Positions 1-38,700 of a stretch of DNA of 64,000 bases are shown in pieces; positions within the stretch are counted from its first letter, which is position 1, and every line of letters starts with the position of its first letter. The notes under the pieces are model-generated. The model was not told the DNA's origin. It saw only the letters and a program-made list of their open reading frames with translations, and ran no database searches. Source of the DNA: Klebsormidium nitens. Its lineage: Eukaryota > Plantae > Klebsormidiophyceae. The translations under genes and the position numbers were made by a program. The stretch spans positions 124,001-188,000 of the forward strand of contig DF237030.1 in NCBI GenBank assembly GCA_000708835.1, given 5' to 3'.

Positions 1-692
1 GTCAGCCAAATCTGATTAGGGACTGGCAAGGTGGTTTCATCTGGCGGTCATGAGATCCTTTGGCTTTAGAGGCACAACTCAATTCCAGATTGATTCCAGT
101 GGGATTTGTGTATGTGTCAATCAGAGGCGCCACATCGGCATCAGGTCCAGGTAAAAGAATCGGGGTCGTCTTGTCTGCTCCAGAGGGGACGTCACCCCTC
201 TTTTTATGTCGCGCGCAAGTGTGGACTCCCAGTGCTTGGGTGTGTCGTCCTCAAACACCCGATTCGTACTTCTCCAGGTCCCGTTGATGTGGGATTAAGG
301 AGTGGTTTACGACTTACAAGACACGGCCGGAAATGAAGCTTACCGCCATGTATGCTTATCACGTTCCTGATGTTCGAGCCCCCGATATCAAACGACGTAA
401 TTTTGTATTACTGACCCTTCTCCAGGTCCCTCCTGGATGCAACATTCGAGAGGGGGTCCAAACACAATTATGGGTTCTGATTACAAGAAAATTAAGCGAC
501 ACACTGTTGTGTTTTCAAATTCCGCCAGGTTCTCGATGGATCCAACAGCAAGGGGGTCGTCCTTTTGTACAAATAGATGAATTCCGCACAACTCACTGGA
601 TACGGCCCCCTCAGGTAAAGCTCCTACGCCAGAAGCCAAAGTCTCTGTGTCAAGACCAAAGGACGTTACATCCTTACTGTGACTTTCTTCAG

Positions 693-3600
693 GTTCCTGC
701 TGGCTTCAACATCAAGGGGGTGGTCCTGTACAACCCGCAAGACAACTCCCCCTGGGGCAAGTTCACGGGCGCGCTCGCCGACTTCCTGAACAAGGACAAT
801 CTGACGTTTGGCGGGAACTATCTCAACATTGCCGTCAAGCTCTTCGGGATGGGCTGGATCACAACAGGGCAGGTGAGGGAGAGCCGTCCACAGTGACAAT
901 GTTTTGAGCAGTCATTGGTCTGACCTGTCACATGAGGTCGGACAGAGGCACTCTCTCGTGAGGCACGTGTTGGTGGATGAAAGAGAATGTCAAGGAGACA
1001 GGATCGATCACAAACGAAGCCAAGCGTCTAGAGGTTAGGACGTAAACAGCGTGTTGGACGAAAGAATACAAACAATAGCCGGAGACGATTGAAAGTGAAC
1101 CAGTAACAGGAAAAGTAAAAGGGAAACGTAGTGAAAGCAAACGAGGTCCAGAAGTCTCTGCGCAGTGGTACGTAAAGACGCGTTGGTGGATGGAGAAGGA
1201 CGATAAGGAGACAGACTCGATCACGCTAAAGCAGAACAACGCGAACCAACAAAGATCACACCATTTGCACGTAGCAGTATGTAAGAACATGTTGACGAAC
1301 AGAGAAGAGATGGTAAGAGAAAGCGCGATCAGAATACACTGAAGAAGACACAGTAACATATGCAAGTTCGATTCTCTCCTGCGCAGTCGTACGTGAACGA
1401 CCTGTTGTTGGACGGATGAATAGTAACAGAAAGGGAAATGGAATTGTTGTTCAAAAATAAGCAAACCACCTGCGAACTAACAAACACTGAGTTATATTCG
1501 CGGAGTGGTAGGTGAACGTTGTGTTGGTGACGTGCGAAGCAGGATGGACCGCCAGAGTCGATGAAAGCGAATTGGAAAAAACAGCAGAACCAAACACGTT
1601 GGTTTTTCCCGCGCAGTGGTACGTGAACGATGTTTTGGTGGACGGCCACGAGTTTCCGGTGTACAGCTGGGTTCTCGACAACGAGTCCCAGATTGCGTTC
1701 ACCGGCAAGGCGCACCTGCCGCAGGACACGCCTCCCGGCCTGCGCCATTGGCGCCGCCTCAAGCTCATCCAGAACCAAGACATGTACGACTACCAGCCGG
1801 TAAGTTTCGCGTGGCTTTTCTGGGGGGTGAAACACTGCAAGTATCAGCCCCTGCATTTCTATGCGCTTTCTGGATGAAAGGAAACATAACATTAAGTCGC
1901 TTAAAATCGAAAGATGGTCCTTTGGAAGCGCGCTTTTGGGGAATGCGAAGCCGTTTCAGGACCCGGATGTGTCTGACTATCAGCCCGTGAGTTTGTCGTG
2001 TCTTTTTCGGGGTGATGTATCACACGTCTGTAACACGCCTTTCTGGGAAAGGAGGATGCATTCCTCGTACGAGAGCCGGAGTTGTAACATTGTCAGCCCG
2101 AATGCGCGAGTCCGTCAAATGGCTGTTGCCTTCGTCTAGTTTTTGGAAAATTTTGCGGCTGCTCCGGGAGCTAATCGGCAGCAACGGCCAGCGAGATGAA
2201 AAGGGATAAGTTCCTGCAAAGGGTGCAGTCGGGATTGACTGCGTGGCTTCAGTAGCTGGCAGTTTTGAAATCCGATATCGAAGCCTGCCGTTCCAAAGCC
2301 CGATGCGACTTCGGTTATTCGCGGCTTCAATACAAGCTTGGAAAGCAGCGCTTCAACACTTTGCTCGGCTGTTTCCTTCGCAGTACAACGACCTGAGCGT
2401 GCCCCCGGACAATGCTGACGTCAACAGCGCCGGATACAGACCTACCTTGGACCCTTATCCAGCGTGAGTGGGCTCCGGGTTGGCATGAAGCGTTTTCATG
2501 GCCAGTCATTCTATTCCGCATGCTTTCTCTTATATGTCGAGCCTGCGGACATTGATTCCCGTTACTTCCGCCCCGTCCCCAATCCGCCGACCATCTTTTG
2601 AACTCAGCTGCAACTGCGACTAGATTTGTTCTGCCCCTTCAAACTGCTCTGCTCGAATTTTCCCCTACATAAAGCTCTGACATTGTGAGAAACGTCCGCT
2701 GGTCTGTTCCTTGTGTCTTTCCCGTCATGCACCAGCTCAAGCCCCCCCGCAATCTTCCCTCACCCCCCGAAACCACAAGTCTAAGCTTCTACAATTCCGC
2801 TCGTGCAGGCACCAGTGGGTGGAGCGCAGCGGCCCCAAGCTGGAGCAGGTTCCGAAGGACGAGCAGTTCCGGCTGGACAAGCGCTACGACTTCGGGCACT
2901 ACACGCTCACCTCCGTCCTCACCGCGCTGCTCTCCGACCCGATGGCCGGCTTCCTCAAGCTCGTCTCGTCGTTCGGGTAGGGTTTCAGGGTTTGAAGAAT
3001 TGGGTTTCGCGGTTTGAAGAAGTGGGTTTCGCGGTTTGAAGAAGTGGGTTTCGGGGTTTGAAGAAGTGGGTTTCACTAGTCTGGGGTCTCAGCTTTGCCA
3101 AAAGGATTACGTTGGAAATCAGAAGAGTTTCAGGTTTTTCGACTTTCCTCAAGCTCGCCTGATCTTTCTCAAGCTCGTCTCGTCGTTCGGGTAGGCTTTC
3201 AGGATTTAAAATTTGAGATTCACAGGTTTGGGGTTTCGCCTTTCCGAAAAGGTTTGCGTTGGAATCCAAAGATTTTGAGGATTCTAAAACCCTGAAACCT
3301 TCGCCTGATTTCGGGTAGGGATCTTTCGGGTAGGGGTTTTAGGAGGGGATAGTTGGGGTTCTTGGATTTTACGGAGTTTCTACTGTCTAGAAGCTCGATC
3401 CGCCCTTTTTGGGCACGAGGTTCGAAGACTGTGGCTTATAGTTCTTCTCAAGCTCGTCTCATCTTTCGGATGGGGTTCAAGGACAGGCACTTTTGGGCTA
3501 TTTGAAACCCCCAAGCTGCATGTCAAATATCCGGAAGCTTCGCTCTTTTCGGTGGTCAGGAATAACGTTTCTGAGGTTCCAAACGTTCCTCAAGCCCTTG

Positions 3601-10755: not shown

Positions 10756-12344
10756 GTTATGGTGGCCTGAGGTGTGGACGAAGGGGAGGAGTTGTTCTGT
10801 AACTAAGTCGGGTCCGGAGATGCTTATTTGATGTATATTCTGACTGATGTATATTCTGAGGGTCGGAGGAGAAGGGTGGAGCGGAAAGAGAGTGGTTGGA
10901 GTCTGAGAATAAGGGCTCAGTGTTGGAAGAGTCCTTGCGAGGAACATTCCAGTGACGCCCGGGGGGAGTTGGCCAAGCGGTGAAAAGTTGTCAGTCGTAG
11001 CAAACGTCAGGCGTGCTTTGTACAGTCTTCTAAGCTCCCCAGGAAGTTCCTAGGGGTGACAATGATTGCGATAACTAGTAAGTCAAAAGAATCTGTAGTC
11101 CTCGAGTGCTAGGGTTTTGCTCTAACAGATGAAGAGGCGCCCATTTGTCGTGCGGACGTTTGTCAGCGGACGCCCAGGAGCTCTGACGTGGCGGCCTCTG
11201 TTTGCTTGGTTTGTGTGCACAACTTGAAAACAATAGCTTGTAGATCTGAGTTCCGCTAGAGATACTAACGTAAATATGGGGTGGAACAGACCTTCGCTCG
11301 TCGGCGTGTAATTAATGAATAGATATGGACTCATGTGTTTCTGTTAAACAGGCTCTTAGATAGTTGGTAAGTACATACTTATTTACGTAAATTTTCAAGT
11401 TTGCTACGAAAATTTCTTTATAGATCGTGTGTTGTATTCGTCAGCCGTCCGTTCACTTGAGACCTCTTTTCTTCTTTTGACGACCTTTAAGCTAGCCTAG
11501 CTAGGCCGGCCCATTTTCACTTCAAACCACCAGATATCGAGCGACTGCGACGGTACTATGCGTCCAGGCGGCCAATTCTCATATGACTTGCTACATGCAC
11601 ATATGTAGTAATGATCATGAGCTGGCCGCCGACTCACTCGTCAATCATGACCATGCCACAGCATAGACGTTGCCGGCCGCGGCATGGAAGAGAAATGATG
11701 AATGACTGAAAGGCCCATGAGGTTACTATGATATGCAGTCGGTTATCTTAGCTTTGGACATTGGGACCATGTCGCAAAGAAGTCCCCCGGCGCCGCTGCA
11801 CAACGAACTATCGACCACTTGTCACCGTCGCGTGTAATTGGACCACTTTCCTACTTCTATCCGACTAATTTCAGCAAACTCGACCTGTAAGTACTCAAAA
11901 TTTCGTATATCAGGCATGGATCTGACAAAGTTCGTTTGTGACTCTTCCTCCTAGCCAGATGCCAAGCATGGCTGCATCCACAAAGCAACCTATCTTACCT
12001 ACCCAAAGCTTCTCAAAAAGCAGACTTGCATGGCCGCACTGGGTGATCCATCTAAACCTCGGACGTCTCAAGCTAAGCTCCAAGCAACGAGCATGCAAGA
12101 AGATTTGGCTGGTACTTACATCTACTCCAGACATGACAGCTTCATCCCAGACCTTCGCTCCTACGAAAGTCTGCTTGTCTACGCTCGGTTGCTTGCCAGG
12201 TGCTGTCTAAAAGTACACGGCCATGCGAGATAAGTTCCGTACAATCTGACGGCTTGCTAACAGGTTCCCATAGAGTTTGTGCAGAAGCTACGGGCTACGC
12301 TCTATATAAACACTCCTTTAAAGCAGGCTCCCGTTGAAAGCGGC

Positions 12345-15300
12345 TCAATTTCCGTTGGAAAGTTCTAGAACCTCCGCAGCATTCAACAAGTCGTCCCCTG
12401 CCACACCCGAAGAGATGGCCGTCAAAACGTAGCTCCCGTCTCGAAGCCGCAAGCTAAGCGCTCTCCGCAGCGATTGCCGCCCCTTCACCGCCTCCCAAAG
12501 CGTGCAGCTATACTGAACGACGACACTGAGTAGAGAAAAGGTTATCGACTGGACGAAGATCGGTTCGTCGATGAAGATGCGCGTGGCGCGCGAGCTGCCC
12601 AGCATGTATAGCGCGGTTTGGAAGCCGGCCTGGGGAATGGACTCTAGAAGTAGCTCTACGAGAACGCGCGACTCGTGGTACGCCCGCGCGCTGTACGCGA
12701 TATCCCCGAGAACTAGATGCGCGCCGAAGTGGTTGAGGATGGCAGAAACGTCTAGGAAAACGACCGCTGGGACGCCTAAAGGAAGTAGCACAAAAGCTAG
12801 AAGCTTTTGGGTTATGCTGCTAGGGCCGGCCGGGCTTTCCTGCGGCGAACTAGGTGGGGGGGGCGGCCAGATCCACCTCATACGCGGACGCAGTGGGGAC
12901 ATAAGCGGGCGGCTCCGGCGCAAAAGCAACAAGCGATGCATTACCCAGAAGCTAGCAACTAGGTACGGGGCGAGAATCGAAGCGAGGATGACCCACATCG
13001 GCCACGCGCCCCATACTTGGGCGAGGACCAAGACGTCAGTGATCAGGTCGACGAGGCATACGATATGCGCCACAATGCCCCATACGCTCTTGGCCACAGC
13101 GACGCAGGCTCCCCCCGGCTTGGTTGACGTATTAAGCGCGGCGCCCTTTCGACGGGAGCGCCGCGCAGCGACGCAGGTAAGCAGGGTCGACAGGAGGAGA
13201 AGGCCTGCAGAAAGGGGTAACGCAATGAAAACCAGTACTTTCAAATCAAGAACGAGGAAACGATTAGTCCGAGTCAATCAGGACTAGTTCTGTTCCGTTC
13301 CACGATTCCACAGCCGTTCGTACCACCTCTTTGGCAAGGTCAGGCTGCACTCCTTGACTTAGCTGCAGGTAGTTCAGGATCTGCGAGGGGGTTTGCAAAT
13401 GTTACCACCGTTGAGAATTTGTGCGGACCTAGACTTGCCAGAAGCGCAAGCCGAGGAACGGCAATACTTCCCATCAAGTGCATTTCTGTCGACTTTGAAT
13501 CCCTTCAACATGAAACGATGAATGAGTCGTTCAGCTTTTGTGAGACGGTATGATTGAGAAGTTGACGGACCAGTTTCGAAGACGGTTTGTCAGACCGGAA
13601 AAGTAAGCGGTCGGCCTTGAGAGCGGCACAGCACATCCTGCCAGTATCAAAATCTGCAATCGACTCTATATCCAAACGAGCCGTCCGCACAGAAGAGCAG
13701 AAGCGCACTTGAGAGGCGTGGATGAAAAGCAAAAGTAACATAGAAAGGGAGATGTAAGCAACTGACGCTGAGACGATGCAAGATGTCCACAACTCCCCTA
13801 CACGCTTCCTCTTGACCAGGGACTGGACATCTCATAAACGATTTCTCATGTTCCAATTGACATCATGAAGCGACTTATAAACGCACCTGCGAACACGCAA
13901 TATGCAATCGCAACCACTCGCCCCGCTTCCGGATTCCGGCACAGGTTTCCCCGCTGTACGCGCGCAAACCCGACGCCGGTATATGCCTCCCCTTCCGGCC
14001 CGAGGTCAATTCCGTCAAGAAAGTCGGTGCTGTTCAGAAAATACTTCCCATACTTGTTCGTCAGATAAGCCGACGAGACGTACTCCCCGTCTACCGTGAG
14101 CCCTTCCTCCACCACCGAAGGGGGATCCCCCGCCAAGAAAACGGAGATCTTCCCCAGGCACACGCGCCGCCTTGCCGCCCGCGACAGTTTCGACCCCGTC
14201 CCGATCAGGTTCACGGCGCACCCGGCAGCCTGCCCTGAGCACGCGTCCCAGAAGCGGACCTCGGTCAGCGCATCGCCCGCCCACTCGACGTACTGACACG
14301 TGGCAGGCGTCAGGGAGAGGTCGAGGGCGGAAGCACCGTGGGTTGGGAAATTGAGCCGGAGGTACCGGAGCTCGCTAAACTGGCGCATCTCGGGGGTTGG
14401 CGCCGCAAAGTAACCGAAGGATGTCACATAGTTGTTCCCGCGCATCATGCCGAGAAGGGGTTCAGGAACTGGGCCGGAAAGGTTGGTGTTGTCGAGAAAG
14501 AGCGCGGTCACGCGCGTCTCATTCAGCTCCACCGGAATGGGCCCGGTGAGGTTGTTTCCCGACAGGTCCAACCGGGAAAGCGTCAGCTGAGAGAGCTCCC
14601 GGGGGATCCCCCCGGTCAGCCGGTTGTCGTGAAGGTCAAGGTAGCTGAGCCCGCCCGTACCATAGTTGACGATGTCGCCGAGTGTTGGGGGAATCGGCCC
14701 CGAGAGCGCGTTGCTGTGGAGATCGAGCTTCGAAAGGAGCCCCCCCGGGCCCAGTTTCCCTAGCTCCGAAGGGATCCCCCCGGAGAGGCGGTTGTTGGCT
14801 AGGATCAGATCGAAGAGCGAATCTAGATTGCTGAAACTGGCGGGAATGGGGCCAGAGAGCTGGTTGTTGCTCAGATCGAGATCAAAGAGGTTGCTCAGTT
14901 GGCCCCACTCTGGCGGGATTGACCCAGAAAGATTATTGTTTGAGAGGTACATATAGTGCAGGTTCTCGCATTGCGCTAGCTCTGGGGAAAGCGGGCCTAA
15001 GAGCAGGTTTCCGTGAAGATCCAACACGTCCAGACCAGTGAGGGCGCCAATCTCTGGCGGAATTGGCCCACTGAGTTGATTGCTATGCAGGCTTAGCTCA
15101 TAGAGATTGGTTGCATTAGCAAGGGTGGCGGGCAGAGGAAGAAGAGGTTGCCTAGCTGACCAAGCGACTCGGGGATTGGTCCTGAGAGCGAGTTGTTGTA
15201 AAGGTAGAACCGGGTTAGTGCAGGAAGGGAGCCTAGTTCAGGAGGAAGGGGGCCGCTGAAAGTGTTGTCGTGGAGCGACAGGTGTCGCAACCGCTTAAGC

Positions 15301-15824
15301 TGTCCCAGCTCTGGGGGGATTGCACCCGACAGGGCATTCCGAGAAAGGTTCAAGTACTGCAGATTGGAGAGCGAGCCTAGCTGGGGTGGGATCCCTCCCG
15401 ATAAGCTGTTGTTGAAAAGATACAACCGGTTCAGTTGGGGCAAACCGCCAAGTCCAGGAGGGATGGGACCACTCAGAGCATTGTTGGAGAGGTTCAGGGT
15501 TTGGAGGTTGGTTAGGCTGCCCAGCTCATAAGGTATGCCGCCCGACAGGCTATTGTTGGAGAGGTCCAGGTGCGCAAGCTGTGCAAGGTTGCCAATCTCT
15601 GTGGGGATGCCTCCGCTGAATGCGTTGCACGAGAGGTTAAGGTATTTCAGATTGGTCAGGCGGTGTAAACCCCTTGGGATGGGGCCGCTCAATCTTCGAT
15701 TGGCTAGGTCAAGGCTAGTGCCCAAGTTGGTAGCGTTGCCCACTGCTTCATCAATTGTGAGAGCAGAAGCCGCCACAGCAAAGTCCACCAACACAACTAA
15801 AAGAGCTAACTTTGAAAACCCCAT
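12345..15824 (-). pseudogene. LRR receptor-like protein with C-terminal XK-related-like multipass membrane domain; frameshifted in LRR9
   Basis: Signal peptide MGFSKLALLVVLVDFAVAASA (ATG 15824; alternative 15833). About 18 plant-type LRRs (LxxLxLxxNxLSGxIP) and a Cys-containing stalk follow. A GT-AG intron at 13205-13886 joins ...AYCVFAG to LLLLSTLLTC (TM helix). The last exon has VDLITDVLV, ELLLESIPQAGFQTALY and SITFSLLSV, and ends at TGA 12345. The frame changes at 15133-15134. No kinase domain follows. Confidence 0.8.
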
Positions 15825-16579
15825 GTGGCTCATTTCAGCTCGCCTGTGCTGCTCTACGCGCATGCTCTTCTTATCGTTTCACCACTCTCTCTGAATCTAT
15901 GAAAGTTTTTCCTGCAAGAACCTGAAGACTGGAGATGAGAGCAAAAATTGGACATTAGATGTGCCAAAGAGAAGCATAATCTCGAGAAGGTGCTTGAGAA
16001 GCTGAGAGGTGCCACCGTGCCAGCTATACTTCAAACCCGTTCTGTGCATGAGCTCCTGGTTTTGTGCGCGAAACCTAACTCGAAATCTAAGTTAGCATTG
16101 AACCGGGCCGGTGCAAATGGAAGGATGCCGGCCGCCGGGCGCTCTGATCCAAGGCCGTTGTAGAAGAACTGGCCGGTGGGAATCACCAACTTGAAACGGT
16201 GAACAATGTGCCGGTTCGGTCACGTCCTGATTACGGGCAAACCCCACGGGCAACGAGCAGAGGGAGTTCCCTGCTTCGGAGCTGGGTCATTCTCGACAGT
16301 CGCAGAACCCTTCGATGAGCTGATCCGACGGCTCCGGTGTGCTGGTCATGCAGCACACTCAGTTTGCGACTTCAACGAGTGCCAGCGCTTGCAAGATGCG
16401 TTGCCAGCATTCAAGAATTGCTTGCTCAGAGTCAGAGTCAAAGGCGAGATTCACGAGAGCTGACACAGTGACAGAGAAAGTGCTCAGTCAAATCACAATG
16501 AGATTCAACTCATCAATTGGTGTACGTTTGTTGGCAGTATAAGCTGGACGCTTGCCAGAATCCAATCAGATTTCAGACA

Positions 16580-18505
16580 ATGGCGACTGGGCACAGCGAA
16601 GCGCAGGTTGAAGAGATTGTGAGCAGCATCTTTCCAAGGAACCCGGGTTCTGTAGATCTGATGAGACCGGAGACCTCGCAGGTTTTGCAGAGCATTTTGG
16701 AAGAAGCGCATTCCAGAGATGAGACTGTTAGGCTCTTGGCAATCTGACGCTTCAAGGATATCTTCCGGCCATTCCAGGAAACGACGTCTGCGCAAAGTGC
16801 AGTGCACGCAGCTGTCTTCCTCTTGGAAAGAGGTTCATGAGAGCAATCAACCAGGGACTGGAAGACTCACTTGCTGGACGGTGGCTTCTGGTGCCCAGCG
16901 CGGAAGACATAGAAATGCTGGCTGCTACTGCTGATGGCTCAGTCCCTGCTCTGATGAAGCCGTCAATCTGTGCAAATGCGGTAGAGTGCCTTGCGGTCGA
17001 CAGCCGCACTGTGAAGTACAAGCTGAAATTTTCACCGCGCCTGCCTTTCCTTCTAAAAACCCTCTTCTCCAAGGAGTTCACTCTACCATATGATCAGGCT
17101 TCAAAGCCCTGGACAGCCCAAATAAAACAAGCGGTCATCTGTGCAATCCCCAGGCTTTTTTCCTCTGATGCTTTTCCGAAGGAGATTGGCCAGAGCACGG
17201 ACTTTCTCATGGCAGTCATGCAGAGCGCTGTTGCATACTTTCAGGACAAGATTGTGGTCAGGCATGCCGCTTCAATCATCCACACTGCTCGACTCTACTG
17301 CTTTGTTAGATCGTCTGAGTCCGTAACCCCTCTCGAGGAAAGCTTCCTCCGCTTTGCAGCAAAGCTTTTCACAGAGTCTTCCGACAAGACGTGGATTTTG
17401 TGTATCCTTGAGACACTATCTACTTTCATTGCGAGTCGTCTCCACAGTCTGGCCAAAGGCCAGAAACCCTTCCCTGAGATTCCAGCACTCAGATCGTCGG
17501 TTCTTGCCCTGCTTCTTTGTGAGGACGAGCTTCACAACAGCGTTGATGCCAGGAGGCTCGCTGATTTTGCGGGGTACCTGAATCACTCAGCTGCTCTTGC
17601 TGCCAAGAGAATCGAGGCCTTTCCAGGCAGCCATTATTCAATGGAAGAGGTGAAGCAGAGCGCACGAGAAGACCAGGCAGCAGTGCAGAGAGCATCACAG
17701 CTGAGGGGGATTCTATCATCCCCCTCGGAAATCGAGGGGAGCGGCCACATGTACATGTCAAGATCGCGGGACAGGGATGCAGCAGAGGAGGAAGCGCTGA
17801 ACAAGGGCTTAGGTGCGGTGAGAGACATCAGAGCGCCAAGGAAGTGCTCAAGGCTGGGGTGCAAGAAGTTTGAGGACAAACCGTGAGAGTTCCGCAGGTG
17901 CGGGGCGTGCAAGCTCGCCGTCTACTGTGGACCAGGTTAGATGGTTGAGCATGTTTCTGACTCCACATGATTATGCTGACTGTGTTATCCAACTGTGACT
18001 TCTCAAAATGGATGATCTCTTGTGTCGTCTTTTTGATTCTACTTACTACCAATCATTGAAGAGAGTCTGTGCATATCACATAAGCGCAAGTTGAGCAAGA
18101 ACTTTTGACTTGACAAATCTGCTTGCCGCTTTTGCCAATATTCGATCCCCCCATTTACACAGACGGTGCCGACAAGTGTCGTCACCTGATCGAGTTCATT
18201 TCGTTGTGTCTCTTCGCAGTCGATTCTGTGGCGTTCTGCTGAGTTCTCCAGCAATACTTTTGATTTGGATTAAAAGGATTGCTGACATCAAATGTTGGAT
18301 ACCATTGCAAGTACTGAACATTGAACTTCTACCAGAAACCAGCACCACTGTGCTTTGGCTAGAAGCTTTTTGAAGATCCTCCAATCCTTTCACCGGTAAT
18401 CCCAAAAACTCTGCAATCAGGGGTCCCCTCATTGTGTTCTTTGCACGTTGTGCAGGGTGCCAGAAGGCTGCATGGAAAGCAGGCCACAAGCAAGTTTGCA
18501 AATAA
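16580..18505 (+). pseudogene. MYND zinc-finger protein, disrupted (frameshift ~16731, nonsense 17884)
   Basis: Reading through TGA 17884-17886 gives KCSRLGCKKFEDKP*EFRRCGACKLAVYCGP. Intron 17936-18455 then leads to exon 18456-18505, GCQKAAWKAGHKQVCK*, completing a MYND finger. Upstream, restoring one G at ~16731 (GTT AGG [G]CT CTT GGC) joins ORF 16517-16747 to the 16837 frame. The start position is uncertain. Confidence 0.75.
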
Positions 18506-26762: not shown

Positions 26763-29700
26763 CTACTTCAAATCCTGCACAAGCGCATTCAGTGCCTTGC
26801 TCGACAACCGCACTACCCGTTTCGCAATCTCTTCGACCGGGCCAACTAGATACGCACCACCAAGCAAACCTTCCCCCTCCGCCGCGGAAAGGGCCCTGTT
26901 GAGCCCACGCGCAATCCGCACGTGCTGGGGCAGCTTCCTCTTCAAGTACCGCAGGTACCTCAACAAGGCCTCCGGCGCGCCGTCCCACGTGGCAAGAGCG
27001 GGCGGCACGCGGAGGTACTGCAAAACGAGCGCCCCCGCGAAGCCGTACATCTGACACGCGGCTAGCTCCGCAACGAGACACGAAAAGGCGACCGCCGCGA
27101 GAGGGTTTACGCCGGGGCTTTGGGGACCGTTCGAGAGGAGCAGCTGCTGCTGGTCTCGCGCCAGGGGGGTGACCGCGAGGCACAGCGCACGTAGCAGGTG
27201 CGTCCCCCCCTCGTGGGCGATTTTGGGCAGTAGCTCGTGCGCTAGAACGAGCCCCAGAAGATCCGCATCCACCTTGTCGAACTCTCTTCTCGCTGCGGCC
27301 ACGAAATCCGACACGTGTGGGCACGGTTCAATCTCAGACACCTGTCCGGACTCGCCGCGACTTTCCGACTCCTTCGCTCCTTTCCCCACCCCCGCGCTTT
27401 CCCTTTGGATGTAGCTCGCAGACTCCTTGCGCTCTCCCCCGCTTTTCGTACCCGTCCATGACGTCAGCAAAGACACCGCCCTCTCCGTCTTGTCCGCCAG
27501 AGGTGACATCAGAGCCACTTTCGCTGCGGCCACGCTCCCAATCGTCTCCTCGGCTTCACGTGTCAGCTCCAGGGCCTCCGTGGGGCTGATGACGTCATCG
27601 CCGGTCCAGCGGTCAAGCACGACGAGGGCAGCCCGCGGGGTGCGTGACGTCAGCAACACGGAGAGGAGCAGCTTGGCCGACCTGCACAATGGCCACGTGT
27701 CAGCGGAAAGTGAGATGGACACGTGCCAAGAAAGGCAAGAACGAAACAGCCGACACTACAAGTAGGGCTATATTGTCAAAACGTGTGAAGCAGATAAAGG
27801 GTATTGCGAAAAGCAGGCAGAGCGTAGAATTGACAAGAGCTTCGATTCCATGGTCGCGGAGCCTGTCTTTCAAGTGCCAGAGTCCTGTGCCTATTAGCGA
27901 GCGTCCAAAGATCAGCAGCTTGCTAGTGCTTGCTTCTCACGGAAGCGGAAAAGACGGGTTCATGAGACATAAGAAAGAGCAGACAGTAGCTGCTCGTTTT
28001 CCGCAACAAAATCTGTAAAGCTAACCTGAACAAGTGACCACTATTGGATGTGACGAGACTGAAGACGAAAAACGAAACAGGGCTAACGGATGTACAGCTG
28101 GGGGAAAGAGGTTTCCTAGAGAGTCAAAAGGAATTACATACCGAGTTGCCAAACAACCAGAGATATTTGGGAGCCATCATCAGGGAAACCTGGGGACAAA
28201 TTCGCGGCAGACTCTCACCCGTGGAATCGACTAATCTTCGTCCCTTCTTCTTCACTCTCTTGTTCTGCCGCTGCCTCCGCCCGTCCAACAAGATCGCTTC
28301 CCTTCTTTTCCGCGTCTCGCTCTCCCTCGGACTCCAGAACCGTTGGCTTTTCTTCGTCCCTGCTGCGTTCCCCTTTCTCTTCCGTTTTCACAGAACTAGA
28401 CCCGTCTTGTACAATCGCCTTTCCGTCTTCCTCCTCGGCAGACTTCGCTCCCTCCGACCCTTCCGATGTTTCTGCTCCTTCTTGAATTGCACCTGTTCCT
28501 GCGCCACCCCCCTCTTTTCCCTGCTCAACGCCCCCCCCCGTTTCGGAACCAAACGCCGCCGAGTTCGCCTCCCACAGCCTCAGCAGCCCAAACAACGCCC
28601 CCACCCGCGCCTCAAACACCCCTGCTCCTGACGCTGACTCTTCCCTGACGTCACCCGACTCTGTGCTGATGTCAGCCGACGACCCACCGACGTCAGCGAC
28701 CAGCGTCCGGAACAGCGCCTCGCACGCCGGAACCGTGCTGACGTCATCCACCTCGCGGTCCGGCCACTCCCCCTGCACAATCTCGGCGGTCTTGAGTAGC
28801 AGCAGTGACGTTCTGGGGGGATGAGGCCCCTCGGCATTCGAGCCCGGAACTCCCCCCCCCTGCTTAGTTTCTTCGCTCCCGGGGGGCAGTCGCCAGCCTT
28901 TCCAAACCCGGGGATTGCCCCCCTGCCCCGGTTTGTCTTCCAACGAGTTCAGCAGCTCGAGCGTCCGGATCTTCCTCCGCAGGGGAACGGCCGGATCGTC
29001 CATAAACGCCTTAATCCGCGTCCAAACCTCCCGTCGAACGCTGTCGAGTTCACCCCCGTCTTCGCTGCTTTCTTCGTCAGCTAATCCCGCCAAGACCAAC
29101 TCCAAACCGTCTTGTGAACCCGCCTGCACTGACCCATTTCCGCGACTCAGTGCTTCCTCGAGCGCTGACCGGTAAACGGCCACTAACCCGCCGTTCCTTT
29201 GACCCGTTAACCCACCGGTATGCGCCTCTTCCGGACTTCCCCCCCCCTCACTCTCACTCCGCCCTTCTTCACTTTCTCCTTTTGCTTCCTGCCCGTGAAG
29301 TTCCGTCCACATCTTTTTGACAGGCCGGTAAGGAACCCCGACCAGAACGAGCGCCTTCAAAGCACTGTATCGGACCCCCCCTGGGGATGCCTCACTTTCA
29401 GCTCCGCTCCGAGTACCACTTTCCGGCCAGGACGGAACGGAACGCTCGGCAGCGGCAGCCTGGCTGTCGCTGACGTCACCGCTCTCTTTCACTTCTTTCA
29501 CCGCCTTCAAAACAGCGCCAGCCTCCGCAAAATCTGCCGCTAGTTCCTCAAGCCGTTTGTTTGCCCGCGGGTTCTCAAATGCTGCGGCTTTGAACAGCGC
29601 GCTCGCATCCTCGTAGAGCCGCGTCCGAAGCCTGAGCGCTTCTCCGGGTTCGGACGGACCCCCAGCTTCGTACGCCCACCGCAGGACGTCCGAAAACAGT

Positions 29701-32700
29701 CCCTCCAGGTCCTCCGGCCCCAAGTTTCCGATCGCACCTTTGCTGTCGTCGTAAGCGCTCGCCAGTTCTTGAATCCCAGGCACTTCCTTTTCGCTTCCAT
29801 TTCCGCTTCCGCTCCTGGCCGCTCCCGGGACCGCCACAGATCCCTCTTTGCTGACGTTGTCAGCCTCGGTAATGACGTCAGCAAACCGCCTCCGCACCGC
29901 AGCAAGGTGAATGCGGCCCGGGGTCGCATCGCTCCGCGCCGAGAACGCCCTCTCTAGTTCTTGGACGGTCCCCACCATGGCCTCCGCATTAAGTAGCGTC
30001 ACGTGGCTTTGCACCAGACCCAAAATTCCGCTCAGAGACCCGTTGCGAAACGGCTCTAACAGTGCCTTGAAGTCTGCTTCGGGTGCTGACGGCATGAGGA
30101 TGAGGTTGGCGCACCGGAGAGCGGGAAAGAAGTCTGGGAAGGAGAGCGCTGACCCCGGGGGACTCCAGCTCTTGGCGAAGTCGGTCTGTGCGTCGGGGGG
30201 GAGCTTACGCCAAATGGAGTCCTGGAGACGCCGCGGGTGTGATCATCAGCAATGTAAGCGAACAAGTTTTGGCAGGATAAGACCAGAGGCTCTACAGGTG
30301 GGCTCTTACGCCTTCGCAATTGTCATTTTGTTGGACTCCTCCACTGGCAGTCCGCTGACTCACGACGTATTGAAGTTCTTCCTCCGCTATGCGGAGCAAT
30401 AGGCCTGCTTCACTCTCTCTCTAGGTGGCTGCTTTCAGGTATCCCGCATCGAAGGCTACAATCAACGAGTTTCCATAGACTCTGCAACCCTCAAGAAGGC
30501 TGAAAGTGACGTCCTTTTTGGGAACTCCGCAAAGAAGGGCAATTGAAGCCGCACGAAGATGACGTTCCTATTAGCGCAAAGTGGTGGGAAGAAGAGCTCA
30601 CCATGAGAGAGAACACAAGTGCTAAGCGGTTGTGTCGTGTTCCGCCCAATGCCGGCCAGACGTCTGACGTCAGCGCATGCATCAGCTCCACCTCCCTTCC
30701 ACTTAAGCCCTCTTGACTCTCCCGGACGCCGTAAGCTACGTCCGTATCCGGCCAACTAGACAGAACCAAGGTTTGCACGTGACAAATCAGGACGCGCCAC
30801 GTGTCCACCCCATACCGCTCCGCCAGCGCCAGAGCCTTCCGGAGCGCTGCGCTCTGCTCTTCAAACGTCCTCGTTTCGGGGGGCTGACTCCCCCTGCGTT
30901 CCTGACCCCCTGGAGCGGTGACGAGCGACATAACGAGCTCCTGTTGGTGTTCTTGGTCGCCGCTAGCAAAGCGGTCAATGTCAACTCCCGGCAGAACCCC
31001 CTCCAAACCCTTGGCGTCCTTGAGTGCCGCCAGTCTCGCTCCGTAGTCCAAACCTTTTTTCCTTAACCCTGATTCCGCATCGCTCCCCCCCGCGCTTTCC
31101 TCCGAGGCCCTGTCCGGCTGTTTGCGCATCTTCGCCAGCAGCTCTTCCGTGCTGAGGTGCAGCAGATTCTCGATCTCACGAGGCCCTTTGTCTGCCGCTA
31201 GCGTCAGCGCCTGGATCCCGTAAAAGTGAACCGCCAGCCGAGTCGCTCGTTCCACCTCGGCAAACGCCTGCGCGTGTTGTACCACTTTCTCCACGAACGA
31301 GGCTCCCTCGTCTGGCCCCATCGCTAGCAAACAGCTAAGAGCGACGCTTTCATACTGGTGTCTTGAATGAGCGCTTGCCGGAGCATCCGAAGTTTCCGCC
31401 CCTCCTTCCGAAGCCCGGTCTGTTCCGAGGGCCCACGCGATACCCGCTAACTGTGCCAACAGCTCGTCACTCGCTGCGAGACCAGACTGGCTCAAAGCGG
31501 TGCGGATAAGCATCCCCGCAGAATGCCCTCGCTCTAGTTCGCCAAAGGACACCTCGCCAAGCCTGCTAGCCTTGTCGAAAAGGCACACCTTTGCCAAACC
31601 CGGCAAGTACACGCGAGCGAACGCGACTGCAATGGACGAAATTCCGGCTGAGTCGCTCACTCTCGCGACCTTTCTCAGAATCTCCATCCCGCTTCGGTCT
31701 TCCGGCTTCACATCTGCCGCCGCGCCTGGCGCTCTGAGCAAAACCCTCAAATAACCCTCCTGCAAACCCGTCTCCAATCCCGCCCCTATACCCCGTCTCA
31801 AGACCTCCTCGCACCGTAGCGCCAGATCCACGCCCTCCCAGACCCTCAACAGCTCATCCATCCCCCCGTCTTCCACGTTCGCAATCGCGAACCCCAAGAG
31901 CTTCTTCCGGTCAGCTGGGCCGACGCCCTGTCCGAGATTCTCGGAAGAGGTTCCGCCCGCCCAGTTTCCCATTGCTGCCGCAAGCGCCCAGGCGGGGTGG
32001 TAATTCTCGTCGACCAGCTCGAGGCAGACCGTGAGAGCAAATCGGACGTCACCGGACGCGAAAGCTGCGTCCGCGGCAAGGGACTTGATGCGGCTTTGCT
32101 CGGTGGAAGTGGAGAGGCCGAGTAAAGTTGACACGTGTAGCAGGTCGGGCAACTTCAAGTATGCCTGCGCAACAAGATGATCATTTAAGTACGTACGGCT
32201 TTCAGAGAAGTTAAACCGATCTCATGCGACTAGTGAGGGAGTGCGCACAATAGATGGGGAGCAGAGAGGCAGGGATGGAAAGGCGAGGCTTACTTCGGGG
32301 AAGGAAAGGAGAAGTGAAGACTGCCGTCGAAAAGTGAAAGAATCACAGCACTCACCAGAGTATCATCAAGAACGCAAAGGCGTCTTGACAGGCCTTACAA
32401 AACGAAGGGAAAGGAGATTGCAAAGGACAACAAGAAGAATGGTCCACTGTTATGCGCTGCTAGAGCTGGTCGCAACGTCCCCTTCTTTGAGCTCCTTGTC
32501 CTGCTGCGGTAATTGCAGAAAAGAAGATTGGCGACCATGGTACTCACTACGCCGGACAGGGGACGAAAACCCGCAAACAAGGAACTAACAAAGCACCATT
32601 GGCTTTGCTTGTCGTTCAGCCATTTGCAGCGCCTCCTCTTTGTCCTTGAGCTGCTTGTATTGCAGCGGAGGATAATGATAAATTCGAAGTGCGCCGACCA

Positions 32701-35700
32701 TGAAGCTCTTGAAACCGGACAGAGGACGGAAGAACGACCAAGAAGCTGCTGTTTGCTTACCTTGTCGTGCGCAGCAAGAGCCATTTGCAGCGCCTCTTCC
32801 TTGTCCTTGAGCTGTTTGTACTGTAGCGGGAGGAGCTCGACACCCAGCTTGGGCAGATGAACCGTGAGGGCCTCCATAAGATCGCGGTCAGCGGCCGCGG
32901 CCGCATTGCCAGGTAGCAGGTCCAGGCACTCGCGCGCATGCCGGATGTCGATACTGCCAATAGACACAGGCAAGGATTAATGGGGAGCTCAAAAGGAATC
33001 ACGAGAAGTTCAAGAAACCAACGGCATCGAAAATAAGTTCCTCTCACGTTGCCAGGTAGCAGGTCCAGGCACTCGCGCGCATGCCGGATGTCAATACTGC
33101 AAAAATCCCGAAAAAGAGAATGATTGAGAAAGTTCGCAAAGGATAAACAAGAATGCAAAGAAGAATCTATGAGAGGTTCAAGTAGCAGAATGCTTCAAGA
33201 CGGGATCCTCAAAGGCCCGGAATGGCCTAAAGGGTAGCGACTGGAAAGCAAAGTCTCTTCATAAGCAAGCAATCCTGAGAAGTACTTCCGGAAGAGCGAA
33301 GGTACAAGAAGATCTCAAATGTGCTCTGAGATGTACACGGCGCGGAACGACTGCGTCACATCACTTTCGCAGCTTCTGACCAGCTCGGGTGATGTCAGCA
33401 GCCGTTTCCATCGTTGATGTGTTCCGGAACGAGGAAATCACCCAAAGAATCCCAACCCACTCAACCACCCAGATCTCGACGCGTCAACACTCAAGATCCA
33501 AAACAATTGAGGCCCATTGCGACCGGAAAGATGGTCTGAGAAAATTGACGATATTCCCAACCTGTCAAGCGCCGCCGCCGAGTAGAAGTACTCCCGCGCG
33601 GCCCCCAGGACCAGCGTCTCCGCCTTGTCCGCCAGCAGCGGGGGCCGCTTTTTGCCCCCGGAAACGTACCCCCGGGCGAGCGAAAGCCTCCCCGCCCGCA
33701 GAAGCGCCCGTACGAATTCGGACAGCAGGTACTGGGTGTCCAAAAAGGTGAAGGCGTCCGATTGGAGAGCGGTGAGATCGTTCCAGAGGGCGTCCCATTG
33801 TGCATCCGGGCCGTTGGATCGGGAGGCCCAGGCCAGGAGCCGTCGGATGAGCTGCTTCACACCGGAGGGGTCGGCGTCGCAGGTGAGGAAGAATGCGAGG
33901 GGGCGCGCCATCTGCCGATGGAATCTCAAAAACTTTAGGCAATTGAGTGAAGCGGCACCTGTGAGCGGGCTCCGCCAGTATATCATTCAGTCAACGTTGA
34001 GGAGATTTCGGCTTTTCTGTCGTGTCATGAAGGAAGCTTGAAAAAAGACGCGGAGATATAATTGCCTTGAATGATCACGACTTCTCCATAAGCACAAGGG
34101 CAGGAAGCACACGCGGAAGTCGTCCCCTTAGTTGGGTTCGGTCGCCCATCAGTTCGAAGAGAGGTTTGTCACGGGTTTCTGTCCCTAAGATACGACTTTG
34201 CGTCAAACACTGTATGCTGGAGGTGTTTTCGCAGAGAATCAGCTTCTTGAAATGCTCTTTCGCCAGAACCGCCCAGATATTAGTGTAGCAGCGGCTTAGG
34301 ACAATAAGAAACGTGTCGAGTTTGCACACAAGCGGAGTATCAAACCCCAACGCTACGTCATCACCAAACGCCATACAATAAACCCCCTAGGATGAGTACA
34401 TTACGAATTGCTCAGGAGCGCCAGAAACCACCGATACACTTACCTGTTGCTTCGCCAGAATGCGCCCCGCTCTCACATGCCGCTCCGCCCGCAAAACCCG
34501 TTTCTCCAACCCTTCCAGCCGCTCACGCGCCGCCACGTCAGCACCCGCTGCCACGTCATCACCCAGCTCCTTGTGCCCCGCGTCCTCCTCCAACGCCGCC
34601 CCTTCCTCCCCCTCAAAACTCTCGAGCGCGTTCTCGAACTCGGCAGGGGGGGCGTTTGCACCCGCTGTCTCCCCCCCCGTCCTTGGAAGATTCGCGAGTA
34701 TCTCAGCCATCCCGCCTTCCTCCCCCTTTCCAGGGCCGATCTTCTTTGGCAGCCGCGAGAAAAACCCCGCAACGCCTCGTTGCCCCGCCGCGCGTTCTGC
34801 CGCGCTTTGAAGGAACCCGGCGACTCTTGCGCGCTTGCTGCCCGCAGGACCGAGCGCCAAAGCGGCGATGCTCGGGGCGGGTTGCGGGGGGCTGCCCCCG
34901 ATCATGGCTTGCGGGCCTGCGAGAAGACAAATGCGCATCAGCAACCTTGCAGAATGCGACTTTTAAGACGACAATGTAAGGTAGTCCGTGTCTCCCATTC
35001 CTCTAAGGAGCTTGCTGAAAGACTTTGACTCAGCAGCTGTCGTGCCGTCTTGTTCAGATTGATAGAGGCAACCAGTGTAACTCTAGCTGCGGTCCAGCAA
35101 CTCGGCAAGTCCGTAAAAAGAGCGTGGGGGCAAGGTAAATAGTTCTCTGCCAGGACCAACGCCATCGCTACTGATTATCCTCATAACGCAGTCTAAACTT
35201 GCCTCGACCACCAGAGGGACCACTTGAAAGAGACATCCTTACCTTGCTTGACACCATCTCCCTTCCCGCTGACGCCCTGAGCCCTGGGGCTGCCGCTCGG
35301 TGTCAACGACTTGGGCCTCATCAGGTCACCCAGCAGCGCCGCCATCTCGTCCCAGGCGTCTGTCGCCTGGCAAGTGTAAACGCACTCCAGCGCGGTTTCC
35401 AACACCTGCTCGTGGCTCAGCAGGCGCTTATTCACACCGGAGCCAGGGAGCGCGGTGGAAACAAGCCCCAGCGCCCCTTTCTCGGCCTGCTGCAGCAGCC
35501 ACCTACGGGGGAACGACTCGCTTGGGCTCATACTAGTTGCGTCGCCCCCTGTCTCCGGACTCGCGGTACTCTCGCCAGCTTCTTCCGGCCCGCCAGAACT
35601 TTTAGGCGTTTCCTCCTGCCGTTCAGCCCAGCGCCGGGCCACCCGGTCCGCCGGGCCCTCTAAATGTATCACCACGTCTTCCTTAGTCGCCCCGCTCATA

Positions 35701-38700
35701 ACGTTGCAGTAACGTTCGAACCCGTCCATTCCCAACCACTCTACGAGGCTCAGATCGACCGCTCCCGACGCTTCTTCAGACGCCTTCCCGCTGTAAACGA
35801 CTTCGTACAAGTCTTGTACGTCTTCGGACAGCCGCTCGAGCCCTCGGACGCCCAGATCGGTGCCCAGAGTGAGCAGATACAAGCTGTGTTCCAAAAGGCC
35901 ACTTTTCGAGTCGATCGCCACCGCGCGAGCCTTGTACCACTCAGAGAGCTCGTCGCCCGAAGGCCAAACAAGGCCTTTGCTCAACTTCGCCAGCTCCTCC
36001 GTGCTTTCCGCTGCAGCAGCGGGTAGCGAGCCGCTTTTGATGGCCGCTAAGGTTTCCTCGGATTCGATCCAGTCGGGCCGTCGGGAAGTTGACGCAAGCA
36101 GCGGTCTCGGCCCAGGCAACAGGCTCCGGATGCTATAGGGAACCACAGTCTCGGGCATGGCGTCCAGAACCTCTAGCCAATCCTCAGCCAGGCTGTGGGT
36201 ATGCCGCTTGAGCAGGACCTCTAGAGGCCCTGCGCTGCAAGCCTGCGCAAACTGGACCGCCAGATCCTTTAAGCTTCCCGCCTGGAACGCTGCAAACTTG
36301 TCGGCCGAGAAGCGGTTGTTGTGGATCACCAGAAACGTCGCCAGAAGGTCGCTGCTCCGCAGCAGCTGCAGCCGCCGTTCTCGGAACCACCAGGCTTCCC
36401 CGTCCCCGCTTGACTGTGCCCCCGCAGCCTCGGCCACCTCCGGAACCTCTAGAGCTTCTTCCTCCACCTCCCACCCGTCCCCCTTTTCCGGATACCGCCA
36501 TTTGCCAGTCTCCTGCAGCCCGTACTGCAGTAACGCCCGCATCGCTTCCGCGGTTTTCGGAACCCGTCGCAAACACTCCCCGATAACCCACCGCCGGTCG
36601 CGTATCTTCCCGAGGTTGTCTCCGATGCTCGCGGGACCGAAGTCGGACCGCTCCCAGCGCGCCTTGTACGCGAGATCCGTGTCCAGGCTGTAAAGCTTTG
36701 CGAGGGAAAGCGCCGCGCCATACTCTTCGTGCCGGATGTGCACTGACATCATCTCCAGGGGCGAGCGCTCCACGAGTGACGTCAGCCGCCACGTACGGAT
36801 GGGCGGGGCGAGGGCGTCTGTTCGTCGGAACCAGCCGGAGAGGCGGCCGAGAATGCCGGCCTGAGAGGGCAAGAGAGCACGTTCAATAAACAACTACCCG
36901 ATATTGAGACAAAACCGAAAAATACAACGGGGAGGGACCGCGAAAAGAGCAAACGAGCAGGGATATATTTTTTGGGCGGCCGTCGACTGTCAATCGTAAA
37001 CATAAAGCAAGTGCCACAATTGGATTCCAGGAGCGCAATCAGGCGACCAGAAATTGAGCTCTTGCATACGTCTTAAAGATGCCGCCTACATATGGAAAGG
37101 CGTGACAACAGGATAACCAGTCGAAGACCGAACGATTTTGAAAAACTAATACTCTAGATGGATCGCAGGAGATGAAGGCTGCAAAAACTTGACGAAAGGC
37201 GGCAGCCAGGAGATGTTTAGTGACGAGCTCAGGGCGTCACACGAGCTCATGACGTCACACGCCGACCTTTCATCCATATAATCCAACCTTGAACTTACCA
37301 ACTTTGCGAAAGTCGTTGTCCATCTCAAAAGCATTGCCGATACGACTCCTGACCCGACAAGATATGCTCACCGGCGCAGTCGTCGTGGCTCCTTGCTGCA
37401 CACCCTCATCACGTTTCTCTCTCTCCTCCTCTATCTCCTCGATCCCGTCCAGTACAAAGGCCCTCTTTTTGACAACGCCAGTCACCCGCGGACTGGCTCC
37501 AAACTTCTCGGCAGACTCGCCCAGCATGTTTACAAGGCCCGGAGGCTTGCCCACTGTGACCGCGCCGTCTGCCCGCGACAGGAGCAAAGCATCGTCCGAC
37601 CACCACGCCACATCATGGACGTTCGCACTCGCTTCCGAGCCCCCCGACTGCGAGTTTTCCCCCGCTCCTAGTTGCAGAGGCGATGCAGACTCCCCCGCTG
37701 CTTGCCGTCTGGCAAGGGCCGTTCCGTCGTCGTCATCGGTTCCCGCGCCAATCTGAACCAGAGAAACGGGCCCTTTGCCCTCCGGACCCAAATTCAAGAC
37801 GCGCAGAGACTTCGACGAATCCAGGGTTGACACTTGGCACCCGTCAGGCGAGCAGAGCGCCTTCGGGAGGGCAGGAATTTGCGCCCAGGCGGGCCGGCGC
37901 AGGGTTTCGAAGCGGGAGGGTTTGACGGCGCCGGCAGAGAAGAGGAGACGGTGGAAGGGCGCAGAGGAGGTGAGGTGCCAAACGGACACTGAGAAGGGCA
38001 CACCTGGGAGAAAAAGGGGCTTGCGGTTAGATTGGGCGTCGCATTTATAAGCACACTAGTGAGATTGGGTCCTGAGGGCGGCTTGAAGAGGCCGATTGTA
38101 ACCCGTCCGATGAATTCAAATTAGCTGTTCACACCACCCCTTTTGAGTGCAAGCGCACTTGCTGTGCCCGCTTTAATTCTTAGCGGCAGGACTGAAGGGC
38201 AGAAGGGGCAGAACATTTAGGCGACTGCTTAGACAAAACGTATGCAGTCCAATGTTGGTGGAACCCTGAGGACCCTCTGCAGGACAGAGGAAACACAATC
38301 CAAGTGTATGCTAGCCTTGACGAGTGGCTCTGGGCTTTGTTGCTGAGATATGAGAACACTGAGCGGATGCTCACAAGGCCACCCAACCGCTTGGTACACT
38401 CGACATTAGCTGACCCCCTTTTCTTCTTGACTTGCGTAAGGAACATCATTTGCGTCTCATTGACCAGAAACACAGGGTGCCAAACATTCAAACCCGCTTT
38501 ACTCAAGAGTCAGACATCAGCGAATCTTCAGATTGTCAAACAAAAAATCGATCTTATGTCACTTAATGTGAAACTCACTCTGTCCAGAGGCGTCGGTGAA
38601 GCATCCTGGCCCCAGCACTGTCGCCGTTGACTGGCTCGCACAGTAGGCGAGGCAGAATGCCCCTTTTGGGTGCTGTTCGCGCATGTCGATTTGAGGCCGG

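Follow-up and report, generated by a model that had tools for sequence, protein, structure and literature searches.

Cell-surface receptors of the plant lineage are thought to signal via kinases or, in the case of receptor-like proteins (RLPs), via kinase co-receptors. XK-related (XKR) scramblases, in turn, are regarded as an animal family of two repeats, and the scrambling they carry out is switched on by caspase cleavage or by phosphorylation of the C-terminus. Here we describe a gene on the minus strand of Klebsormidium nitens contig DF237030.1 (assembly GCA_000708835.1) that lies within a stretch of 64,000 nucleotides (positions 124,001 to 188,000 of the contig; hereafter the window, in whose own numbering all coordinates are given). 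The gene joins a plant-type leucine-rich repeat (LRR) ectodomain to a membrane module resembling one half of an XKR protein. We consider it likely that this locus belongs to a green-algal family of receptor-like proteins of type I, of which it is a transcribed but frameshifted copy, and that the output module of the family is similar to the N-terminal domain (ND) of the XKRs. In the literature on XK-related proteins, scramblases and LRRs in Klebsormidium, algae and plants, we found no LRR-XK fusion or XK-like protein described.

Plant LRR receptor-like kinases (RLKs) and RLPs have in common with the algal receptor a signal peptide, LRRs of 24 residues, a juxtamembrane region, a single transmembrane (TM) helix and a basic stretch. 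RLKs have a kinase and RLPs a short tail, however, whereas the algal receptor has a module of four TM helices instead; moreover, the stalk of ~180 residues between its LRRs and its TM helix is family-specific and without recognisable relatives, which sets it apart from the plant LRR receptors. For the module, the described proteins with which it can best be compared are XKR8, XKR9 and XKR4 (Pfam PF09815; 7DCE/8XEJ, 7P14/7P16 and 9BOJ, respectively). The order TM1-TM2-re-entrant helix-TM3-TM4 is common to both, as are an acidic TM1 (D..TD), an acidic TM3 (E...E) and a P-Q pair in TM3. The XKRs are animal proteins with two repeats and an inhibitory C-terminus that is cleaved by caspases, whereas the half-XK family is green algal and its module has one repeat, lacks the C-terminal domain (CD) and the second inserted helix (IH2), and has no recognisable inhibitory C-terminus. 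Unlike the XKRs, the algal module is preceded in the same chain by an LRR ectodomain and an additional TM helix, and it carries motifs of its own (WG.WP after TM1, RWIWPPP and GSSRATRIY.D). By analogy, the algal receptor may also be likened to the pairs that XKR8 forms with basigin or neuroplastin (titles of 7DCE and 8XEJ), in which an XK-type domain is combined with a single-pass type-I ectodomain protein. In those pairs the chains are separate and the ectodomain is of the immunoglobulin type, whereas in the algal receptor the single-pass helix and the LRRs are covalently fused to the half-XK.

Gene layout and transcription

A preliminary description of this DNA had proposed that splicing out 13205-13886 links an LRR ectodomain to several hydrophobic helices. 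The stretch was found in 20 public RNA runs from 7 studies, most of which hold 0.81 of its words, and this share is what remains when the intron is taken out. RNA assemblies of four runs (X4, X5, X6 and X16, one per study from 4 studies) were aligned to 11300-16700, and in each there was one contig of 3.4-3.6 kb that follows 11754/11872-13203 and 13886-15941/16030 with 0 mismatches and 0 gaps. The 682 nucleotides skipped in these contigs have CT..AC ends on the plus strand and form an exact, in-frame GT-AG intron, as proposed, and the two sides of 13204/13887 are joined in all four assemblies. A single contig per run covers the LRR part as well as the membrane exon, which places the two on one mRNA. 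The preliminary description had itself named, as a possible refutation, transcripts that assign the LRR part and the membrane exon to different genes. If that were so, the splice would be an artefact of reading. Prokaryote-style gene callers do divide relatives of the gene into an LRR gene and a membrane gene of 230-300 residues, but the spanning contigs, with the intron removed in 4 studies, contradict this division, as do the TM helix and the reading frame that run through the junction and the annotated K. nitens proteins that hold LRRs and membrane module in a single chain. Thus, the idea of two genes can be given almost no credence.

The whole transcript spans ~11754-16030. Its features, in the direction of transcription, are the following.

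15864..16030 (-): 5' untranslated region, from the ends of the RNA contigs; upstream limit 15941 to 16030 depending on the assembly
15093..15863 (-): upstream open reading frame (ORF), frame A; ATG start, 256 codons and a stop; encodes the signal peptide and the first seven LRRs
15762..15824 (-): predicted signal peptide MGFSKLALLVVLVDFAVAASA, hydrophobic, read by eye
15125..15135 (-): frame break in LRR 8, from the genomic sequence and the RNA contigs
14449..15123 (-): second LRR block, frame B; ~8-9 further LRRs, Pfam LRR_1 E 1.5e-24
13918..14448 (-): juxtamembrane stalk with cysteines, ~177 residues, conserved in relatives
13888..13917 (-): first part of TM0, the receptor TM helix; closes exon 2
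13205..13886 (-): GT-AG intron of 682 nucleotides, from the genomic sequence and RNA
13164..13204 (-): second part of TM0, then the basic stop-transfer stretch RRSRRK; helix 2-24 in the AlphaFold model
12471..13112 (-): half-XK module, residues 32-245 of exon 3; predicted local distance difference test (pLDDT) score of the AlphaFold model 84.4
13112-13017 (-): module TM1, AlphaFold model
13035..13049 (-): DLITD, acidic TM1 motif (D53, T56, D57), read in the translation
13001-12912 (-): module TM2, AlphaFold model
12815-12729 (-): re-entrant helical hairpin of the module, AlphaFold model
12686-12600 (-): module TM3, AlphaFold model
12630..12656 (-): ELLLESIPQ, acidic TM3 motif with P-Q (E184, E188, P191, Q192); ELLLESIPQAGFQ begins at 12656
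12566-12483 (-): module TM4, AlphaFold model
12345..12470 (-): cytoplasmic tail, basic and helical, with the stop codon; translation and model
11754..12344 (-): 3' untranslated region; the RNA contigs extend to 11754-11872

The membrane exon (exon 3) encodes 286 residues and its final position is 12345; the intron (13886..13205) interrupts the TM0 helix, and the reading frame is kept across the junction. The intended product of the gene is a protein of ~950 residues that comprises a signal peptide, ~17 LRRs, a stalk, a TM helix and the membrane module. The hydrophobic stretch from 15824 agrees with the signal peptide named in the preliminary description. The LRRs have 24 residues each and are of the plant-specific type (LxxLxLxxNxLSGxIP), with Pfam LRR_1 matched at E 6.9e-34 in frame A; seven regular repeats, one truncated repeat and eight further regular ones, together with irregular units, make ~16-17, so that the array first proposed stands while the count of ~18 does not. 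The stalk contains the motifs CQYVEW, FWDAC, VCLGKISVFL and, at its end, GNLCRNPEA (which includes the NLCRNP noticed earlier), and its cysteines are conserved. The TM helix expected after the stalk is present, divided by the intron. Signal peptide, 24-residue LRR array and single TM helix are those of a plant LRR receptor. A Pfam scan of every exon of the gene gave no kinase family, in keeping with the earlier claim that none is fused here, and neither a kinase nor a short RLP-type tail follows the TM helix; its place is taken by a polytopic module of ~215 residues.

The stalk is conserved together with the module across the Klebsormidium-type members of the family. It had no Pfam match and no ESM Atlas neighbour at 0.8 or above, and a search with the stalk region returned two family members only, too few to judge whether it is shared with kinase-bearing receptors. 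The stalk is an uncharacterised, putatively extracellular domain that accompanies the half-XK module.

(Note that the stretch 12558-12624 on the minus strand, which codes for GFQTALYMLGSSRATRIFIDEP and is the most conserved part of the gene, is touched by several other RNA contigs. These measure 37-3079 nucleotides, differ from it by 2-3 mismatches over ~40-47 nucleotides and then continue into unlike sequence. They are most likely transcripts of paralogues, so that other family members are expressed too.)

Predicted fold of the membrane module

XKR9 is built of two related repeats, each with four TM helices and a partly inserted helix that sits in the inner leaflet, and the hallmarks of the XKRs are acidic residues on TM1 and a hydrophilic, acidic TM3 that is kinked at a conserved PQL (PMC8298096). 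The two motifs singled out in the preliminary description, D.ITD and E..LESIPQ, are present in the window as DLITD on TM1 (13049-13035) and as ELLLESIPQ on TM3, and they follow each other in the order typical of the XKRs. By sequence position, the window copy thus keeps D53, T56 and D57 in helix 1 and E184, E188, P191 and Q192 in helix 3; that is, the acidic residues on TM1 and TM3 and the P-Q of TM3.

An AlphaFold2 model of the window copy, built from a 27-sequence alignment, reached a pLDDT of 84.4 and a predicted template modelling score of 0.80. It runs from the receptor helix through two long helices, a helix-break-helix hairpin and two further long helices to a helical tail. The model was compared with 48,161 PDB cluster representatives without a Foldseek pre-filter. 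Rat XKR9 (7p16) took rank 1 (Z 12.1; root-mean-square deviation 3.5; 153 residues aligned), human XKR4 rank 2 (Z 10.1) and human XKR8 rank 4 (Z 8.8), and generic four-helix bundles scored Z 8.9 and below. A repeat comparison gave Z 11.8 for 7p14, 10.7 for 7dce (34-244 against chain 7-191) and 10.1 for 9boj. A second model, built from the chlorophyte alignment alone (pLDDT 82.4), placed XKR9 (7p16; Z 12.3; chain 2-189), XKR4 (9boj; Z 10.7) and XKR8 (8xej; Z 9.8) at ranks 1-3 of the 48,161, and the next chain, at Z 8.3, was unrelated. Note that the weights of alphafold2_ptm predate the first XKR structures, which by their PDB release dates appeared from 2021 onward; thus, the models are not copies of XKR structures.

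The structural match is limited to the N-terminal repeat of the XKRs. The predicted models contain the elements of that repeat, namely TM1-TM2, a partly inserted helix and TM3-TM4. A two-repeat XK protein would have 8 TM helices and 2 partly inserted helices, whereas the module has 4 TM helices and 1 re-entrant helix, with ~45 residues left beyond TM4.

Profile searches also led to the first half of the XK family. The PF09815 profile (XK-related) has 337 positions and a gathering score of 24.8 bits; we compared it with two alignments, one of 27 Klebsormidium-type members (A1) and one of the chlorophyte subfamily alone (A2). PF09815 was the only family matched by more than one member of A1. The matches were those of P0034 (E 3.2e-4; 20.2 bits; residues 40-239 on profile positions 3-174) and of P0032, a K. 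nitens protein (E 2.5e-3; 17.3 bits; residues 44-252 on 4-190). The two share one register, in which the first helix of the module falls onto the start of the profile and only the first half of the profile is covered. Among the members of A2, DUF6041 and two other families each had 2-4 matches, none of them stronger than E 0.06. The language-model neighbours of the module core in the ESM Atlas include an XK-related cluster (0.89; 193 shared features). In Foldseek, rows for XKRs were the only ones to exceed a template modelling score of 0.3, and theirs were the highest probabilities (0.66-0.97).

Several results weigh against relatedness to the XKRs. The best relatives stay under the gathering score of PF09815, the domain of the window itself had no PF09815 match even at E<=10, and none of the 27 members of A2 matched that family. 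Searches of PDB sequences with the family profile (E<=10) or with the most XK-like member returned no XKR chain, only noise (RidA, a lectin and a phage protein). The Foldseek E-values were all above 0.1 and none was significant. Helical bundles may, in addition, reach Z ~13 through a common arrangement of helices, which bears on how the Z-scores above are to be read. Finally, the chlorophyte branch is without E184 and has lost most of the acidic residues of TM3. Of the checks named in the preliminary description, the comparison of structures ranked the XKRs first and Foldseek gave no significant E-value; in the Pfam profile search, relatives matched PF09815 below threshold and in a consistent register, and the exon of the window did not match it.

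These same results could be explained if the module were a lineage-specific four-helix bundle that resembles the XKR ND by convergence, with D..TD and E..LES.PQ arising by chance or functional convergence. The unmet Pfam threshold, the PDB sequence searches without an XKR match and the Foldseek E-values all favour such an origin, as do the generic four-helix bundles, which at Z 8-9 fall just under the XKRs, and XKR8, which at Z 8.8 with the window model is level with the best unrelated chain. Convergence is hard to reconcile, however, with three XKR representatives in the top 3-4 of 48,161 for two independently built models, and with a best XKR that stands ~3-4 Z over the best unrelated chain (12.1 vs 8.9; 12.3 vs 8.3). 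The re-entrant helix that separates TM2 from TM3 is part of the structural match, both Pfam matches are in one register, the motifs lie on TM1 and TM3, the same helices as in XKR9, and the weights that produced the models are older than the XKR structures. We regard convergence as doubtful, and consider it probable that the module and the N-terminal repeat of the XKRs are remotely homologous. The XK-like domain of the preliminary description therefore holds with regard to fold, motifs, sub-threshold PF09815 matches and language-model neighbours, but as the N-terminal repeat only and not as a full XK domain. The module is a half-XK (TM1-TM2-IH1-TM3-TM4), not a member of PF09815 by Pfam's definition.

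The receptor helix and the module would be expected to take up the following topology in the membrane. The LRRs would lie outside the cell and TM0 would cross from outside to inside, which would place the basic linker in the cytoplasm. TM1 would then run in to out, TM2 out to in, TM3 in to out and TM4 out to in, and the proline-rich loop, the hairpin and the basic tail would be cytoplasmic. The N-terminus of the XKRs is cytoplasmic, and the topology of the module agrees with this orientation.

Relatives in green algae

In an exhaustive HMMER search, the 286 residues of the membrane exon matched 56 cluster representatives at E<=1e-3, and for 16 of these the match reached E<=1e-30. All 10 of the long representatives that were scanned have N-terminal LRRs, and a kinase was found in none of the 10. 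Among named relatives, paralogues from K. nitens are the closest, with ~40-50% identity; members in this species are GAQ78274.1, GAQ78170.1, GAQ84842.1, GAQ78110.1, GAQ93027.1 and GAQ81742.1. (The first two carry the automatic name 'FLS2', which rests on their LRRs alone.) A divergent chlorophyte subfamily includes Trebouxia sp. DBA95257.1. A wider homology search with the family profile returned family members only, none of them already labelled PF09815, and no second XK repeat was present in any aligned member of the family.

The preliminary description had suggested a search for intact LRR+XK paralogues, and the architecture does recur among the relatives. An intact example lies on the JGI metagenome contig Ga0590115_0001293 (3360-6750), where an ORF of 840 residues for LRRs and TM helix is followed on the same strand by a ~120-nucleotide GT..AG intron and then by a 249-residue half-XK ORF. 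The intron of this relative lies past the basic stop-transfer stretch, whereas that of the window lies within the TM helix; thus, the position of the intron varies among family members. Many short hits (230-300 residues) are metagenomic and could be taken for stand-alone half-XK proteins. The sole case that was examined turned out to be the last exon alone, called as a gene by a prokaryote-style caller, and the remaining short hits may have the same origin.

Three residues are invariant in the family, namely W68, which belongs to the WG.WP motif right behind TM1, D152 of the re-entrant hairpin, and G203 of GSSRATRIY.D, a motif located between TM3 and TM4; P191 and F217 are nearly so. Across 27 members, D53 is kept in 21, an acidic residue at position 184 in 17 and P191 in 25. 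At position 188, the Klebsormidium-type members have either E, as does the window copy, or R, so that they fall into two classes; the chlorophyte branch has Q there.

With regard to proteins outside this family, the nearest ESM Atlas clusters to 12348-13205 by features (0.89-0.92) are unnamed eukaryotic clusters of 260-270 residues with members recorded from Mucoromycota and Foraminifera, one of which is also nearest by shape (template modelling score 0.47-0.50). These clusters may represent stand-alone half-XK-like proteins beyond green algae.

Frame break and possible output of the receptor

As sequenced, the locus cannot make the fusion protein. At ~15135-15125 the repeat pattern is disrupted and LRR 8 has ~15 residues as compared with 24; frame A ends its match to the repeat at GNLFFL, and the pattern resumes as PLPATLANATNL in frame B. 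The two frames are separated by a deletion that removed ~8-9 LRR residues and whose length in nucleotides is not divisible by three. Frame A meets a stop at 15095-15093, also in the RNA assemblies, which leaves an upstream product of 256 residues. Frame B is open to 13887, and the 704 codons past the break are all uninterrupted. (This interruption of the ORF had not been spelled out by the earlier reader.) The RNA contigs from 4 studies follow the genome through this point with 0 gaps, so that the break is not an assembly error, and the idea of an intron concealed there was rejected.

A full-length LRR-half-XK protein might nevertheless still be made here, by ribosomal frameshifting, from a minor edited or alternative transcript, or in a natural population from which the break is absent. 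The fully open codons past the break speak for this, as do the correctly spliced intron and the presence of the mRNA in 20 runs of 7 studies; note also that RNA contigs cannot rule out rare variants. Four independent RNA assemblies equal the genome at the break, however, the deleted LRR residues would still be missing, and no ATG of frame B comes with a signal peptide, the earliest of them sitting within a later LRR. We consider a bypass of the frameshift quite improbable. The locus is, rather, most likely a transcribed pseudogene or null allele of recent origin, and that the lesion is recent is suggested by the 704 downstream codons that are still open. A consideration on the other side is that the RNA runs may share one strain, in which case the frameshift could be specific to that strain. 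A stop well 5' of a spliced intron would make an mRNA a candidate for nonsense-mediated decay; the mRNA with the early stop was nonetheless detectable in every run examined.

The surroundings of the locus can be described briefly. No second copy of the family was found within the window. Separate and more deeply covered RNA contigs end or start at 11300-11511 and at 16429-16700, which points to transcribed neighbours close on either side. Further away, an ORF of 566 residues at 35196-36893 (-) matches Sec39 (E 1.5e-6; 27.5 bits against a cut-off of 22 bits) and, more weakly, the KNTC1 ARM repeat (24.6 bits, under the cut-off of 27.3 bits); it probably represents one exon of a trafficking gene of the NAG/Sec39 type, with no relation to the LRR/half-XK locus. 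Two long ORFs at 28218-30095 (-) and 30494-32158 (-), of 626 and 555 residues, matched no Pfam family at E<=1e-3.

For the intact members of the family we propose the following sequence of events. A ligand would be bound by the LRR ectodomain, and the output would be exerted within the membrane. Ligand-driven dimerisation would bring at least two half-XK modules together, and two such modules might pack side by side in the same orientation, like the ND and CD of XKR9; parallel packing of this kind is possible because the number of TM helices per module (four) is even. The assembled XK-like unit would alter how lipids are distributed in the plasma membrane, whether it scrambles them or passes them to a lipid-transfer partner, and the output would include no phosphorylation step. 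At the locus in the window, the normal start would give at most a secreted LRR fragment of 256 residues.

The lipid scrambling or membrane permeabilisation put forward in the preliminary description is an inference, and actual scrambling by the module appears rather unlikely; only half of an XK domain is present, and no half-XK is known to scramble lipids, which counts against such a role. The module could alternatively be a cation-binding or cation-conducting element, or a docking platform. That the intact members are ligand-gated scramblases, in which dimerised half-XKs form a complete two-repeat unit that scrambles lipids or opens a path for lipids or ions, is likewise improbable.

In the family described here, one XK-like repeat is coupled directly to an LRR ectodomain of the plant type, and the family thereby touches both the idea that surface receptors of the plant lineage depend on kinases and the idea that XK proteins are animal proteins of two repeats. 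It suggests a kinase-free receptor output that acts on the membrane, and as a natural 'half' of the XK fold it offers a handle on the evolution of the fold and on its means of moving lipids. To this family the locus in the window contributes a transcribed copy that probably broke recently. If the intact members were indeed ligand-gated scramblases, then streptophyte and chlorophyte algae would possess a kinase-independent output of surface receptors, and the animal XKRs would have arisen by duplication of such a half-module.

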